Sequence record: LC727699.1
Length of the DNA: 64,000 nt
Strand: one strand, 5' to 3'
How positions within the stretch are numbered: the stretch's first letter is position 1; the number at the start of each line of letters is the position of its first letter. Shown piece after piece: positions 22,914 to 62,930 of the stretch. The translations under genes were made by a program, and so were the position numbers. Below the pieces are notes generated by a model. It was given only the letters and a program-made list of their open reading frames with translations. It was not told the DNA's origin and did not search any database.

Positions 22914-22920
22914 CATAAAT

Positions 22921-22945
22921 GCCTCCCTTTGGGGAGGCTTTATTT
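22921..22945 (+). terminator. Intrinsic terminator
   Basis: GCCTCCC-TTTG-GGGAGGC followed by TTTATTT. Confidence 0.85.
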
Positions 22946-23046
22946 CCCTATGGTTCATTTGGGATATTCAGCGAATACTACTATGCACAGACTCCTGCCT
23001 AGTGGACCGATGTAGTACGTAAATACAATACAAAGGAATTTGTCCT

Positions 23047-51878: not shown

Positions 51879-52026
51879 TTTGTATTGTTGGCAAAACTAA
51901 CTGGTTACAATGTAACTGTAAATACATGTATTTAATTTTGAAAACATACTGGAGTTATTGATGTATTGAGTTGAAACTCAATAATAACTCCTACTTTAAT
52001 TTAAAAAATACAAAAGGAATATTTCC

Positions 52027-52680
52027 ATGGCGTCAATCATTAGTCTACCTTTTATCAAACTAGTAATCAGCCGTAATAATAATTACACTGTTAACCATCA
52101 GTCAGGTGCTGATAATGTACCTCATCTATGTGTTAAAGTAAAACATTCTAACGGTTATGCCTGGTTCGGTATTATCATTGTTGATTATGAAAAACGTACC
52201 AGTGGTTGGACTGAAGAAGAATTCAATGCAGTTGTAACTCGTTTCCATGAAGCAATGAATTCTCAATGTGATATCCAACGATTAGAAACAGACATTAACC
52301 GACTAATGGATTCCATCCAAGATGTTGTTACTGGTCGGAAACGACCAACCCTATTCGGCGGTGATAGTAATGACTTCATTCAAATGCATCTTCAAAATAA
52401 TATCCAACTTGATATTTATCGGAATGAAATTAACGAAGATACTCTAACCTATGGTGGGTATCGTGGTAAAGTAAGTCTTCGCCATGGTTATGATGAATAC
52501 AGCTTCTTCCTGTATCATCGTGGTATTATTCTAAACCATTACATCGATGCAGAGATTGCTAAAGAGCTAATTGAAGATGCTCTTAATAAGACTTTCCCGG
52601 AGATTACTTATCTACCGCGAGCCACTGTCGAACCTACAGCAGTGGAACGCACTCGTAATAGACATCTGGATAAAAGTTAA
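52027..52680 (+). CDS. Hypothetical protein
   Basis: 217 aa, AAGGA RBS. Confidence 0.85.
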   Translation: MASIISLPFIKLVISRNNNYTVNHQSGADNVPHLCVKVKHSNGYAWFGIIIVDYEKRTSGWTEEEFNAVVTRFHEAMNSQCDIQRLETDINRLMDSIQDVVTGRKRPTLFGGDSNDFIQMHLQNNIQLDIYRNEINEDTLTYGGYRGKVSLRHGYDEYSFFLYHRGIILNHYIDAEIAKELIEDALNKTFPEITYLPRATVEPTAVERTRNRHLDKS

Positions 52681-52681
52681 A

Positions 52682-53095
52682 ATGACTAGTCAACTTATCG
52701 TAGTTGATTTACAAAACCCTAGAAATAAACATATATACAGTGAATTAACTCATGAACACCCTAGAACAATAACATCACATCTAGTTGAAGAATTAGATGA
52801 TTTTGATGTTCATCAATATTCATACCAAGCGGAGTATAAATCTGGGATTGATCTTAGATTAATATTCTTTTGGGATGGACCATACACTGAACCAAGAGAA
52901 GAAGGTTACGAACCAACTGATCTAGAGAAAAGGTGTGTGAAGTTGTGTAGGCAATATGAGGCTGCGATTAACGGGCAATTATCTGTAGTTGATCACTCTC
53001 GGTTCCGGACGGTGTGTACCTTCAGATCAGATAATAGTTTACCAACAACTTTAGACTGGATTCATAAAGAACCCCCATCTAAAGAGGTTGTGTAA
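52682..53095 (+). CDS. Hypothetical protein (start re-called from 52571)
   Basis: MTSQLIV begins immediately after the previous stop. Confidence 0.75.
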   Translation: MTSQLIVVDLQNPRNKHIYSELTHEHPRTITSHLVEELDDFDVHQYSYQAEYKSGIDLRLIFFWDGPYTEPREEGYEPTDLEKRCVKLCRQYEAAINGQLSVVDHSRFRTVCTFRSDNSLPTTLDWIHKEPPSKEVV

Positions 53096-53188
53096 AAAAT
53101 AGTAAAAGAAATACACTATTCTATGTAGTTCCTTTACGATTGCTCTTTTATCTTAGTTTCAGTTTTGCTGAAGAAGTACCAATGAGAT

Positions 53189-53215
53189 ACCCTCCCCTGA
53201 TCGGGGAGGGTTTTT
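53189..53215 (+). terminator. Intrinsic terminator
   Basis: ACCCTCCCC-TGATC-GGGGAGGGT followed by TTTT. Confidence 0.85.
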
Positions 53216-53236
53216 GACATCTAAGAGGAAAATATA

Positions 53237-53617
53237 ATGTGCAAACAACATCGTGTAGTATCTATGAAAGTTACATGCACGCAAGCTCGCTATCCGATCG
53301 GTCTGTGCGATCTCGGATTTGATAATGCTGCTGATGCTCGGCAATATCTACTAGATGTCGTCGAGTACAATATGGATCGTCTCCACCCACAACATGCTAA
53401 TACATTCCAGCTACAAAATCTACAAGACGGGTTCGTAGTATCCTACGATATCGAAAAAGATGGATCCGTTTATCTTCGGTTAACACTGGCGGCTGTAGCT
53501 TATCAATCAATCGATCTTGAGTTGGGGGTTACCGTTAAAGAAAATGAAGGGATCAGTGTTGTAATCAAAAATTGGATCAATGGTGATTATACTGCGGGGA
53601 ACAAATACTTACAGTAA
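53237..53617 (+). CDS. Hypothetical protein
   Basis: 126 aa, GAGGA RBS. Confidence 0.8.
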   Translation: MCKQHRVVSMKVTCTQARYPIGLCDLGFDNAADARQYLLDVVEYNMDRLHPQHANTFQLQNLQDGFVVSYDIEKDGSVYLRLTLAAVAYQSIDLELGVTVKENEGISVVIKNWINGDYTAGNKYLQ

Positions 53618-53622
53618 TACCA

Positions 53623-53747
53623 TATGTAAAGAATACCCAAATCGGGATCTCCCGGACTATCTCCCTTCAGCGTTCCCGTCCGCAAATGAAGGTGCCGCCG
53701 AGATCCCACCTATTGATAATGCCCTCCCTTCGGGGAGGGCATTATTT
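53623..53747 (+). ncRNA. Candidate pseudoknotted RNA or attenuator leader
   Basis: TATG start, 8-bp P1 enclosing an H-type pseudoknot, then a UUCG terminator. Confidence 0.5.
53717..53747 (+). terminator. Intrinsic terminator
   Basis: TAATGCCCTCCC-TTCG-GGGAGGGCATTA followed by TTT. Confidence 0.85.
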
Positions 53748-53783
53748 CGCTTAAGCCTATTTATTTTATTATAAGGAGTGAAA

Positions 53784-54515
53784 ATGACATATATCGTAAA
53801 TGATGGTAAAGTCATGATTGCAGACTGCCTATTAATTGAGCGGAATAATGCAACTGATAGCATTGGGCGACTTCCAGTATTAGATAACGGTTATATTGAT
53901 CTAACTGCTAAAGCTGAAGGTGTAGATGTATATTACAATGATTGCCACAAGATAATTTTTCATCCGACAGTTACTTGGCAAGGTAAACGTGTTAAAACTA
54001 TGGCTTTTGCTGGAACTATAGATAATGTTTATGATCTATTGAATGCCCTTACCGCAGGTGTTGATTTAGCTGATTGGTTTAAAGTTGAAGTAAATATCTT
54101 GCCAGTCATAGAACGCAGGTTGTTTAATGGTAATACTTCTATGATGTTCACTATGGAGAATGGTGACATATATACAGTTATTCTTAAAGACATGGGTATC
54201 AACATCACCAAGAAAGATTGGGCTCATTTGGGTAGTGGTGTAGATGCAGTTAATAGTGTACTTGAGTTTATCCCTAATTGTAATGATAATGGATCAACCA
54301 AACTAACTGCACTTGAAGCATTTGCTATTGCATGTGCACATACTACTACTGTAAGTCGTAAATTTGATTATTACATCCATGCTACAGGTGAGTACAAGCA
54401 AAATCAAGAACTATCAACTAAACAACTAAAATGGATACTAGCGCGCATTCAAAAGCGGATGGATCTTACCCGCATTTTCAATGACCGCGAATATGCCAAT
54501 AACATATGGGGTTGA
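53784..54515 (+). CDS. HslV/proteasome-beta-like Ntn-hydrolase
   Basis: ATG 53784 (AAGGAG RBS) gives an N-terminal Thr: M-TYIVNDGKVMIAD, HKI, MAFAG, HLGSG and LTALEA match HslV T1/D17/K33/GFAG/IGSG landmarks. Confidence 0.7.
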   Translation: MTYIVNDGKVMIADCLLIERNNATDSIGRLPVLDNGYIDLTAKAEGVDVYYNDCHKIIFHPTVTWQGKRVKTMAFAGTIDNVYDLLNALTAGVDLADWFKVEVNILPVIERRLFNGNTSMMFTMENGDIYTVILKDMGINITKKDWAHLGSGVDAVNSVLEFIPNCNDNGSTKLTALEAFAIACAHTTTVSRKFDYYIHATGEYKQNQELSTKQLKWILARIQKRMDLTRIFNDREYANNIWG

Positions 54516-55036
54516 TTTGTATGAGTGATTCTAATATGGATATGCTATATTACACTAATGTAAATTGGGAACAATATTTTCATCACGTGAAACAACGGGC
54601 AGATGATACTGTTAAAGTAATGTATAAACCTGAATATGAAGATCTTATTGATGAAGCATGTAGACCATTGATTAAATGGTTTAACCAATTCACCAATATT
54701 GCAACTATTTATTGCTGTTCAGGTCATGTTGATGAAGAAACTGGTGGTAGCCCTGGATACATTAGTATTTTATTTCAAGATACCAATGCAGAGAATTCTG
54801 TAATGCGTTTATTGCGTGAAGCAATGTGTAAGGGGCGTGAGTGTAAGATCCCATTCGAAATTGAACTGGGGGTTTATTTCGGGCATCTACATGAGACCAT
54901 TGATAAAAATCACTGGGTCGCCAATCTAATTATCCGCACCAATAGCTACAAACGTAAAAATACGTATGATCGCTATTGGCATCGTCTTTACAACATCATA
55001 ACAACATGTAATACTGAGGGTTTATACACCATCTAA
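54506..55036 (+). CDS. Hypothetical protein with TYW3-like N-terminal motif
   Basis: IDEACRPLIKWFN....ATIYCCSGH resembles TYW3/Taw3 D..I..L...IN.....T.SSCSG. Confidence 0.6.
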   Translation: MGLICMSDSNMDMLYYTNVNWEQYFHHVKQRADDTVKVMYKPEYEDLIDEACRPLIKWFNQFTNIATIYCCSGHVDEETGGSPGYISILFQDTNAENSVMRLLREAMCKGRECKIPFEIELGVYFGHLHETIDKNHWVANLIIRTNSYKRKNTYDRYWHRLYNIITTCNTEGLYTI

Positions 55037-55054
55037 AGAATCTGAGATAATTTA

Positions 55055-55204
55055 ATGAATGATATTAAAAATACATTATTAGTTAGATTAAAGAGGAAAC
55101 AAAAAGCTAAGCGTATAGATAAATTGCAAAGACTAGGTTTATGGTTTATTCTATTGCTATGTGTATCTAATCTATTTGTCCAATTAATAAAAGGTATATT
55201 CTAA
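55055..55204 (+). CDS. Small membrane protein (49 aa)
   Basis: Basic N-terminus plus C-terminal hydrophobic LGLWFILLLCVSNLFVQLI; abuts the next ATG. Confidence 0.6.
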   Translation: MNDIKNTLLVRLKRKQKAKRIDKLQRLGLWFILLLCVSNLFVQLIKGIF

Positions 55205-55885
55205 ATGGCAGAAAAGCTAAGTTTTGTTGATATATTTAAGATGGCTAAAGAGGAAAATGTTAAGCTTGAATTGCATTGTCTAATTGGTACTCGACCAGTT
55301 AGGGGTCTTATTAAAAGTTTAAACTTTAATCAAATCAGACCTGATATATACGAATCTGTTAATCTATATGTAGATGTATTTTCTAAAGTAGTAGAGACTA
55401 GAGTAGATCTATCGAGTACTACTGCTGATTATGGTTGCTGGAGAATGACACCAGAAACTAAGAATTATGTAGATAGTAAATATAACTTACCAGTAAAAAT
55501 GGATATCACTAATCCAGATATCGTTAGGAGTAATATTAATTATTATCTCAGTTTACCTACTCAGGAACGCATTGAATTATTTAATAAAATAAATAATCCT
55601 AATGTCATTGAGGCGATAAACAAAGAATGGTCTAAGATGGTTGTAGAATATTATCAATCTGAGATCGATTTGTTTATTGGATTAATTGATTTCGATCATG
55701 TCCTTATCAATAAGTTCATGGCATTTAACTGGATGGACGATTTATTTGAGTATGCTTTAAATATCCCATTAAAACAAACCAATACAGTAAATGAAGGCAC
55801 CTGTTGCTTACTGGTTCACAAAGATAAAAAGGCAACATATACCCATCTCACTGATATTAAAAATCTTATCAAAGTGAGTGTATAA
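55205..55885 (+). CDS. Hypothetical protein
   Basis: 226 aa, last gene of the + block. Confidence 0.85.
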   Translation: MAEKLSFVDIFKMAKEENVKLELHCLIGTRPVRGLIKSLNFNQIRPDIYESVNLYVDVFSKVVETRVDLSSTTADYGCWRMTPETKNYVDSKYNLPVKMDITNPDIVRSNINYYLSLPTQERIELFNKINNPNVIEAINKEWSKMVVEYYQSEIDLFIGLIDFDHVLINKFMAFNWMDDLFEYALNIPLKQTNTVNEGTCCLLVHKDKKATYTHLTDIKNLIKVSV

Positions 55886-62500: not shown

Positions 62501-62526
62501 GTTTTCCTCAATGAGACAGTATAAAA

Positions 62527-62544
62527 CCTCCCCCAAGTGGGAGG
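62527..62544 (-). terminator. Terminator after the CAU tRNA
   Basis: CCTCCC/GGGAGG stem with TTTTAT tail on the - strand. Confidence 0.7.
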
Positions 62545-62552
62545 CTAGTATA

Positions 62553-62629
62553 TGGTGGGCCCAGCAGGACTTGAACCTGCGACCAAGCGATTATGAGTCG
62601 CCTGCTCTAACCAACTGAGCTATAGGCCC
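62553..62629 (-). tRNA. tRNA with CAU anticodon, most likely tRNA-Ile2 (lysidine, reads AUA)
   Basis: Anticodon arm GGCGACTCATAATCGCTTGGTCGC matches E. coli ileX as recalled; C4-G69 and C5-G68 TilS determinants; no initiator features. Confidence 0.9.
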
Positions 62630-62636
62630 TTTTTAT

Positions 62637-62930
62637 TTATTCTGGTAAGAATGTTCCATCTTTTTCACGGACTAATACACCTGACCATTTGAATGTATTT
62701 GTATCACTAACAGGGCACTCTCTAATTACATTGGTTCTAAATGTGCCATGTGGATAGGTTACAGTGAATGTAATATGATTATTACAAACATGCAATACAG
62801 AAGACTTTGCTTCTGTTAGATAGTGTAAGCCTTGAGCTAATTGAATATTAGTTAATTCAGGGTCACTAATAATAGCGTAAAGAGCTGTTCCTATAATTTG
62901 ATGTTCCCATGATATCCATTTATTATCCAT
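62637..62930 (-). CDS. Hypothetical protein
   Basis: 97 aa, lies between tRNAs. Confidence 0.75.
   Translation of the reverse strand: MDNKWISWEHQIIGTALYAIISDPELTNIQLAQGLHYLTEAKSSVLHVCNNHITFTVTYPHGTFRTNVIRECPVSDTNTFKWSGVLVREKDGTFLPE

Follow-up and report, generated by a model that had tools for sequence, protein, structure and literature searches.

A conserved irregular hairpin RNA with its own promoter and terminator in the gap before gene PHIKZ289 of phiKZ-like jumbo phages

What does a phage of the phiKZ type encode in the short gap between two of its genes, PHIKZ288 and PHIKZ289, the second of which codes for a weakly HslV-like protein? The question was raised by a stretch of 64,000 nucleotides (nt) from sequence record LC727699.1, hereafter the window, for which an original prediction made from the letters proposed at this place a pseudoknot enclosed in a stem and followed by a terminator, i.e. 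a riboswitch-like attenuator gating a protease operon or, alternatively, an independent small RNA (sRNA) or a ribozyme. Phages of this group rely on polymerases of their own to transcribe the genome within a protein "nucleus", and to our knowledge RNA-based regulation has hardly been described in them. According to the data presented below, the gap gives rise to a discrete non-coding transcript, the core of which is a plain irregular hairpin, preserved from genus to genus as a set of covarying helices with invariant loops.

Results

A separate transcription unit in the gap

Over positions 52000-55500 the window is 100% identical to Pseudomonas phage sp. LC and 99.5% identical to phiKZ (megablast), and judged by this identity it belongs to a phiKZ-like jumbo phage. 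Transcript ends measured in phiKZ were transferred to the window phage, its positions being obtained by subtraction of 209545 from those of phiKZ. The ends were mapped by ONT-cappable-seq (ONT, Oxford Nanopore Technologies), which places the start of promoter P130, assigned to the class "middle", at position 263172 of the (+) strand, and the transcription termination site of intrinsic terminator T119 at 263292; together they delimit transcription unit TU198 (263172-263292), which is 120 nt long and contains no gene (Putzeys et al. 2024, Microlife uqae002; bioRxiv 10.1101/2023.10.13.562163). Table S7 of the same study lists TU198 under PHIKZ289 as a 120-nt "5'UTR-derived ncRNA candidate" (non-coding RNA from a 5' untranslated region, UTR), one of 17 such candidates in phiKZ, with its coordinates, sequence and RNAfold energy and with an empty validation field. 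Thus the unit predicted to run from TATG to a UUCG terminator exists in phiKZ as P130, T119 and TU198; its start, however, corresponds to 53627 and not to 53623, and the published class of the promoter is "middle", not late. We conclude that the locus produces a discrete non-coding transcript with its own promoter and its own terminator.

The transcript opens with a 17-nt leader, continues with the 64-nt irregular hairpin and a short conserved tail, and ends in the intrinsic terminator (Table 1). The G+C core of the latter, GCCCTCCC-TTCG-GGGAGGGC, occupies positions 53721-40 (arms 53721-28/53733-40) and is followed by ATTATTT up to 53747, where the last U of this interrupted U-tract coincides with the termination site mapped in phiKZ. 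The terminator hairpin has a calculated energy of -25 kcal/mol, is also detected by a terminator scan, lies, as predicted, 36 nt before the ATG of the putative protease gene at 53784, and carries compensatory differences in its stem between the window phage and phage T2P. The G+C-rich island in A+T-rich DNA, noticed at the outset, is real: G+C content reaches 59% over 53640-53735 against 28-44% in the flanks. The RNA of 53623-53784 (162 nt) folds better than its dinucleotide shuffles with z = -4.2, and for the 64-nt core (53644-53707) this comparison gives z = -3.1.

The core is a plain irregular hairpin

All three helices of the original prediction are present in the letters, namely P1 (8 bp) and P3 (6 bp), given in Table 1, and P2, formed by CGGAC (53653-57) and GTCCG (53678-82, 5 bp); P2 and P3 were supposed to interleave as an H-type pseudoknot inside P1. 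Examined in relatives, P1 and P3 are supported by compensatory changes, whereas P2 is not. The minimum-energy fold consists, exactly in this order, of P1, P1b, an asymmetric internal loop, P3, P3b and an apical loop, and separate minimum-energy folds give the same shape in 10 of 12 short-form homologues (loci L069 and L066 differ). In a structure-blind MAFFT alignment of nine distinct sequences this nested model leaves 94.2% of cells paired, with compensatory changes in 12 of its 21 pairs; controls in which the 3' partners were slid by 1-3 columns retain 36-45% of paired cells and at most two compensating pairs. When 18 sequences were aligned to a covariance model, 18 of the 21 pairs proved to be compensatory, this alignment being biased towards the structure, and the RNAalifold consensus, terminator included, has 24 such pairs of 27. 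Covariation is strong in P1 and P3, the latter being paired in 100% of cases, and it extends to the short helices P1b (CGG/CCG, CGUGG/CCACG, CGUAG/CUACG, CAGGG/CCCUG) and P3b (GCG/CGC, GCU/AGC, ACC/GGU, AAG/CUU).

For P2 the same nine sequences give 66.7% of paired cells and 0 compensatory changes; pairs 28-61 and 31-58, two of the five in this helix, are disrupted in 6-7 of the nine. Its bases form P1b and P3b instead, both of which are mutually exclusive with P2. This helix can be drawn solely in Phikzvirus sequences; there it is invariant, and a covariation test within this genus is therefore impossible. One may still argue that a pseudoknot of P2 with P3 inside P1 does form in Phikzvirus, where CGGAC matches GUCCG as a perfect complement in the window phage, phiKZ and T2P and where loops of 6, 8 and 4 nt would sterically permit it. 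It would, however, exclude P1b and P3b, which covary throughout the family and can form in Phikzvirus too, and outside this genus the broken pairs remain uncompensated, making such a fold very improbable. Another candidate pseudoknot, between ACG/GACG of the leader and CGUC of the apical loop, was rejected: it is absent in phiKZ and T2P and invariant elsewhere. The RNA is thus a plain irregular hairpin without a pseudoknot.

Conservation within the hairpin is of two kinds. The stems are preserved as pairing alone, and two loop segments as sequence: no homologue deviates from AUCUC, the last five nucleotides of the 5' strand of the internal loop, or from CCCGUC in the apical region. The dinucleotide UG opposite AUCUC is the same in all 18 aligned sequences, and one uncultured long-form member (L093) lacks it. 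On the (+) strand the alignment contains seven G-U pairs against two A-C mismatches, an excess which agrees with the mapped direction of transcription. A leader-peptide reading was also considered and dropped, the AUG at 53686 being not conserved.

Homologues in other genera

Matches to the region found by blastn are confined to Phikzvirus genomes. In the group of T2P (87% identical) the hairpin bears two changes, both in unpaired positions, and the terminator stem is rebuilt by compensatory ones; comparison of the window phage with T2P gives 96.9% identity in the core, 83% in gp288, 79% in gp289 and 73% in the terminator with the spacer. Diverged copies were found in phages RVTF4, Psa21 and D6 upstream of the PHIKZ289 homologues detected by tblastn, and a motif scan of IMG/VR added four further variants. 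The same kind of scan in metagenomes gave 24 matches, two of them real and both duplicates of one known variant; in 185,579 bacterial and archaeal genomes it gave 17, all of which fail the covariance model and are chance matches. The model itself, built from nine sequences, matches Phabio, PS119XW, HPP-Temi, PhiPA3, Viktualia and 201phi2-1, as well as uncultured jumbo-phage contigs reached via the neighbouring gene gp287 (L080 was found by motifs instead). Named genera carrying the RNA are therefore Phikzvirus, Pawinskivirus, Miltoncavirus, Serwervirus, Phabiovirus and Tepukevirus, in addition to the uncultured contigs. In every gp287-anchored locus with the RNA it lies 1.4-3.2 kb downstream of the gp287 homologue and on the same strand; a promoter-like A(A/G)TAC ... 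TAT(G/A) precedes every homologue for which upstream sequence was read, and a terminator closes every short and long form read, with none identified in L067.

No family of Rfam 15 covers the hairpin, either at gathering thresholds or at E <= 10, its matches elsewhere in the window being tRNAs only, so the Infernal/Rfam check suggested along with the original prediction returned nothing for this RNA. Our literature searches found no paper dealing with PHIKZ289 or with this RNA family. The main text of Putzeys et al. 2024 does not discuss structure, conservation or function of the RNA, and that of the 201phi2-1 transcriptome paper (PMC11512511) does not mention gp423-gp425 or their intergenic region. 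Within the scope of Rfam 15 and the literature searched, the transcript is already catalogued as a phiKZ candidate, and the family, its fold, the invariant loops, the distribution and the long form described below are new.

A long form of the same RNA

In PhiPA3, PS119XW, HPP-Temi, Viktualia, 201phi2-1 and four uncultured contigs ~280 nt of extra non-coding sequence lie between the hairpin and the terminator, which makes ~360-390 nt from hairpin to terminator. These long forms share invariant blocks in a fixed order, AUCUC, CCCGUC, CUUUCGG, CCGAAGC, GAAGUUA and CUGGCC(A/G)G, between which there are hairpins variable in sequence yet still paired. Spacings between the blocks differ by non-multiples of three, so the long form is not coding. 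CUUUCGG and CCGAAG, complementary and both invariant, may form a long-range or pseudoknot pair. RNAalifold, applied to a sequence-only alignment of long forms, missed even the 5' hairpin, and its long-form structure is therefore unreliable; Rfam searches with the long forms gave no significant match. Comparison of these sequences presents the phiKZ RNA as the short version of a modular RNA, the hairpin being its sole universal part.

Two peculiarities of individual loci may be added. The annotated gene CDS0139 of Viktualia (L007:1086-1367, "hypothetical protein") overlaps the hairpin and the 3' extension and is probably spurious. In the RNAs of Viktualia and 201phi2-1 the leader ahead of the hairpin is longer by ~100 nt.

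Genes downstream of the RNA

The PHIKZ289 product matches the PHROG 1040 profile "peptidase HslV family" with E = 5e-5, three of eight family members giving such a match, the best at E = 7.6e-6; neither Pfam nor PDB gave a sequence match to PHIKZ289, and the AlphaFold2 model of gp289 has a pLDDT (predicted local distance difference test) score of 75. Position 1 of all eight gp289 homologues is Met, position 2 is Thr in seven and Ser in one, and positions 3-5 are mostly Y/I, I/V and V, with exceptions. PhiPA3 gp355 and PS119XW gp368, starting with MSIVV and MTIVI, are remote gp289 homologues with ~21% identity.

The first open reading frame (ORF) after the RNA varies by lineage, being gp289, a small membrane ORF or unrelated ORFs. 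In Phikzvirus PHIKZ289 follows directly, while RVTF4, Psa21, D6 and several contigs have a membrane ORF of 56-78 amino acids (aa) and then the gp289 homologue. Contig L075, Phabio, 201phi2-1, L079 and L067 yielded no gp289 homologue downstream of the RNA. The specific tie to a protease, assumed originally, finds no support: the RNA is kept in lineages lacking a gp289 homologue, and in long forms the hairpin is ~280 nt away from the terminator.

The small hydrophobic ORF just mentioned (56-78 aa), situated between the terminator and the gp289 homologue outside Phikzvirus, overlaps the start codon of the latter (ATGA); it occurs at L004:2271-2504, L005:2334-2504, L006:2286-2504, L069:8437-8655 and L077:8418-8606, and phiKZ has no such ORF. 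Another small gene, PHIKZ290.1 (window 55055-55204, +), encodes a product of 43-51 aa, strongly basic at its N-terminus (RLKRKQKAKRIDKLQR-like) and with a membrane helix in its C-terminal part. This ORF is found downstream of the RNA in 15 of 18 loci, including gp289-less lineages, and was not recovered in L066, L067 and L079. It was considered as a lambda-N-like arginine-rich RNA-binding peptide and rejected in this role, as the C-terminal membrane helix is present in all lineages.

Read-through and neighbouring signals

In the phiKZ ONT data PHIKZ289 has no other mapped promoter and is reached only by read-through of T119 from P130. The "most distant 3' end" recorded for the upstream promoters P128 and P129 is 263293 and that for P130 is 264292 (Putzeys et al. 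2024 supplement); the only recorded read-through into PHIKZ289 thus begins at P130, there being one datum per promoter. Within phiKZ 261514-264292 (window 51969-54747) it is this P130 read past T119 that covers PHIKZ289, an effect which may be promoter-dependent or due to sampling.

The same published table contains a second short candidate nearby, TU196 (phiKZ 262671-262760, window 53126-53215, +), 89 nt long, bounded by early promoter P129 and terminator T118 and situated within the 5' UTR of PHIKZ288. The spacer after T119 (53748-53783) and its homologous counterparts share UUUAU(G/U)(C/U)CG(U/C)CU(C/U)AAGGAG, alike across distant genera. Since UUUAU(G)CC also ends other terminators, for example that at window 22920-22950 and phiKZ T120, this post-terminator sequence may be a general terminator feature of these phages.

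Table 1. Positions of the RNA, its parts and adjacent features in the window, and of long forms in other loci (designated by L numbers)
Feature	Position	Strand	Remarks
Phage RNA polymerase promoter	53603-53626	+	AAATACT, 13-nt spacer, TATG; phiKZ P130
Primary transcript, ~120 nt	53627-53747	+	phiKZ TU198; ends from ONT-cappable-seq in phiKZ
Conserved 64-nt irregular hairpin	53644-53707	+	Minimum-energy fold and covariation
P1	53644-51/53700-07	+	GGGATCTC/GAGATCCC
P1b (3 bp)	53653-55/53695-97	+
Internal loop, asymmetric, 5' side, 8 nt	53656-53663	+	ACUAUCUC; alignments
P3	53664-69/53687-92	+	CCTTCA/TGAAGG
P3b (3 bp)	53670-72/53681-83	+
Apical loop, 8 nt	53673-53680	+	UUCCCGUC; alignments
Internal loop, 3' side	53693-53694	+	UG; alignments
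Single-stranded conserved tail after P1	53708-53714	+	ACCUAUU; family consensus ~R-C-C-U-A-W
Intrinsic terminator	53715-53747	+	phiKZ T119; stem 53715-28/53733-46, loop UUCG 53729-32
PHIKZ288	53237-53617		Gene just upstream of the RNA locus
PHIKZ289 homologue, 243 aa	53784-54515	+	Weakly HslV-like, PHROG 1040
Long form	L062:7241-7612
Long form	L063:7374-7732
Long form	L064:7372-7730
Long form	L007:1131-1518
Long form	L060:3024-3390
Long form	L079:7996-8375
Long form	L080:7177-7545
Long-form 5' domain	L089:10069-10191	-
Long-form 5' domain	L093:3263-3384	+

Discussion

The interpretation that we favour, with a probability of about 0.5, is that the transcript represents a small non-coding RNA of phiKZ-like (nucleus-forming) Pseudomonas phages, the loops of which would serve as a recognition surface in trans, and the terminator as a fixed attenuator. 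Synthesis of the 120 nt is started by the phage "middle" promoter P130 one base past TATG. Two pyrimidine-rich loops, positioned by the helices, would expose the surface to a trans partner, which may be a phage or host protein or another RNA. The hairpin would behave as an autonomous module, placed alone before the terminator in phiKZ and used as the 5' domain of the ~360-390-nt RNA in other genera, and T119 would stop most transcripts without any switching, leaving PHIKZ289 to be expressed from the read-through P130 fraction only. Of the roles envisaged originally, that of an independent sRNA fits best, the RNA having its own promoter and terminator and being independent of PHIKZ289, since it persists where a gp289 homologue is lacking. 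As there is no conserved antiterminator, as the RNA is kept without the HslV-like gene and as a long form exists, a riboswitch gating the protease is unsupported.

Several circumstances weigh against a trans-acting RNA. Hfq-dependent sRNAs typically carry a long U-tail, and here UUAUUU is interrupted. Complements of AUCUC and CCCGUC are not enriched above chance level within the 64-kb window. The unit is always situated directly before an ORF, ~30-40 nt after the terminator, so that a role in cis is inseparable from synteny. Reads from P128 and P129 stop at T119 and that from P130 passes it, which could hint at regulated read-through. Finally, northern validation is absent for the phiKZ transcript in Table S7 (Putzeys et al. 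2024).

The most serious rival explanation, which we regard as possible though with a minor share of probability, is a regulated attenuator acting in cis, where the hairpin would bind a metabolite, a protein or the phage RNA polymerase and thereby set the level of read-through. Every lineage whose downstream end was read has the same succession of promoter, structured leader, terminator and an ORF ~30-40 nt further on; PHIKZ289 has no other mapped promoter and the sole recorded read-through comes from P130, and invariant loops on covarying stems resemble an aptamer or a protein-binding site. On the other hand, the P130 datum is a single "most distant 3' end", each promoter having just one, and may be due to sampling. 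Hairpin and terminator are separated by ~280 nt in five named phages and in four uncultured contigs, and downstream genes vary, gp289 being often absent, so that no common regulated function is apparent. Nor does any Rfam riboswitch match. No mutually exclusive pairing with the terminator arms is conserved. Among 12 short-form homologues the best duplexes of upstream segments with a terminator arm amount to -4 to -13.5 kcal/mol and the terminators to -14 to -25; each phage offers a different partner segment, and no conserved antiterminator pairing with either arm was found. The antiterminator proposed originally, TCTCCC (53660-65) with the 3' arm of the terminator, is indeed complementary to GGGAGG, but TCTCCC/GGGAG(G/A) is not conserved beyond Phikzvirus and the candidate was rejected as valid for phiKZ and T2P only. 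With competing pairings that are weak, inconsistently placed and unconserved, and with inconstant genes downstream, the riboswitch-like attenuator finds no confirmation.

It is rather improbable that the hairpin is an element of processing or stability, capping the gp287-gp288 mRNAs at the 3' end and the gp289 mRNA at the 5' end or providing an RNase III/E signal similar to the irregular hairpins between early genes of phage T7. T119 is also the end point of transcripts from P128 and P129, which have the hairpin as their 3' UTR, and the helix, long, irregular and interrupted by an asymmetric internal loop, would suit such a purpose; however, a dedicated promoter stands before the hairpin in every lineage with upstream sequence read, and loops invariant in sequence are needless for a mere stabiliser. 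A self-cleaving ribozyme or a tRNA-like element can hardly be credited: the fold is compact and G+C-rich, the end of P1, with ACC and the terminator after it, looks like a phage tRNA gene at its 3' side, and a tRNA with its terminator at 62519-62640 gives a weak match to the covariance model, but no Rfam ribozyme or tRNA family matches at E <= 10, ARAGORN finds 0 genes in 53500-53900, and the RNA is one continuous hairpin, not a cloverleaf, with ACU instead of ACC after P1 in PhiPA3.

The locus at 62519-62640 (-), a phage tRNA gene with terminator that scores 19.5 bits with the covariance model, has the layout "...CCC-ACC(A)-UAU..., hairpin, UUUAU", the same as that of the 3' side of our RNA. 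A tRNA minihelix or RNase P substrate was also tried as an explanation and abandoned in view of the varying helix length and the lack of ACC in PhiPA3.

Several known systems invite comparison. sRNA005 of 201phi2-1 and "sRNAgp182" of phiKZ are likewise short transcripts ended prematurely in a 5' UTR, with position and shape conserved across jumbo-phage genera, but they belong to another locus, upstream of the tail protein gene gp182/gp277, and are unrelated in sequence (PMC11512511). Riboswitches with an intrinsic-terminator platform share with the hairpin RNA a structured leader domain, invariant loops on covarying stems and a terminator; the differences consist in the lack of a conserved antiterminator, in the distance to the terminator, ranging from 8 nt to ~280 nt, in the inconstant downstream genes and in the absence of an Rfam riboswitch match. 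The put RNAs of phage HK022 act in cis and consist of two stem-loops that make the host RNA polymerase resistant to terminators. They resemble the hairpin RNA as promoter-proximal structured phage RNAs located upstream of a terminator and by their connection with unusual phage transcription; the hairpin RNA differs in having one irregular hairpin and in dealing with phage-encoded polymerases, and most of its transcripts would terminate. The long form is comparable with GOLLD and ROOL as a phage-encoded multi-hairpin non-coding RNA of ~360-390 nt, and in the window the RNA locus is a few kb from a tRNA cluster; however, the long form is smaller, has no Rfam match and has so far been found only in Pseudomonas jumbo phages and uncultured jumbo contigs.

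A more far-reaching proposal, which we consider doubtful at present, is that the hairpin may be the universal core of an undescribed structured-RNA family of nucleus-forming jumbo phages, with loops that would bind a specific regulatory factor, for instance the non-canonical RNA polymerase of the phage (in a put-like manner) or a component handling RNA within or outside the phage nucleus.

Thus, the locus for which a protease riboswitch with a pseudoknot had been an appealing but mistaken model contains an RNA that is better conserved than the surrounding proteins across at least six genera. The catalogued phiKZ candidate is shown to be the short version of a larger RNA present in PhiPA3, 201phi2-1 and their relatives. 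With its mapped ends, a fold supported by covariation and two invariant loops, it offers a defined handle on the small RNAs of these phages.

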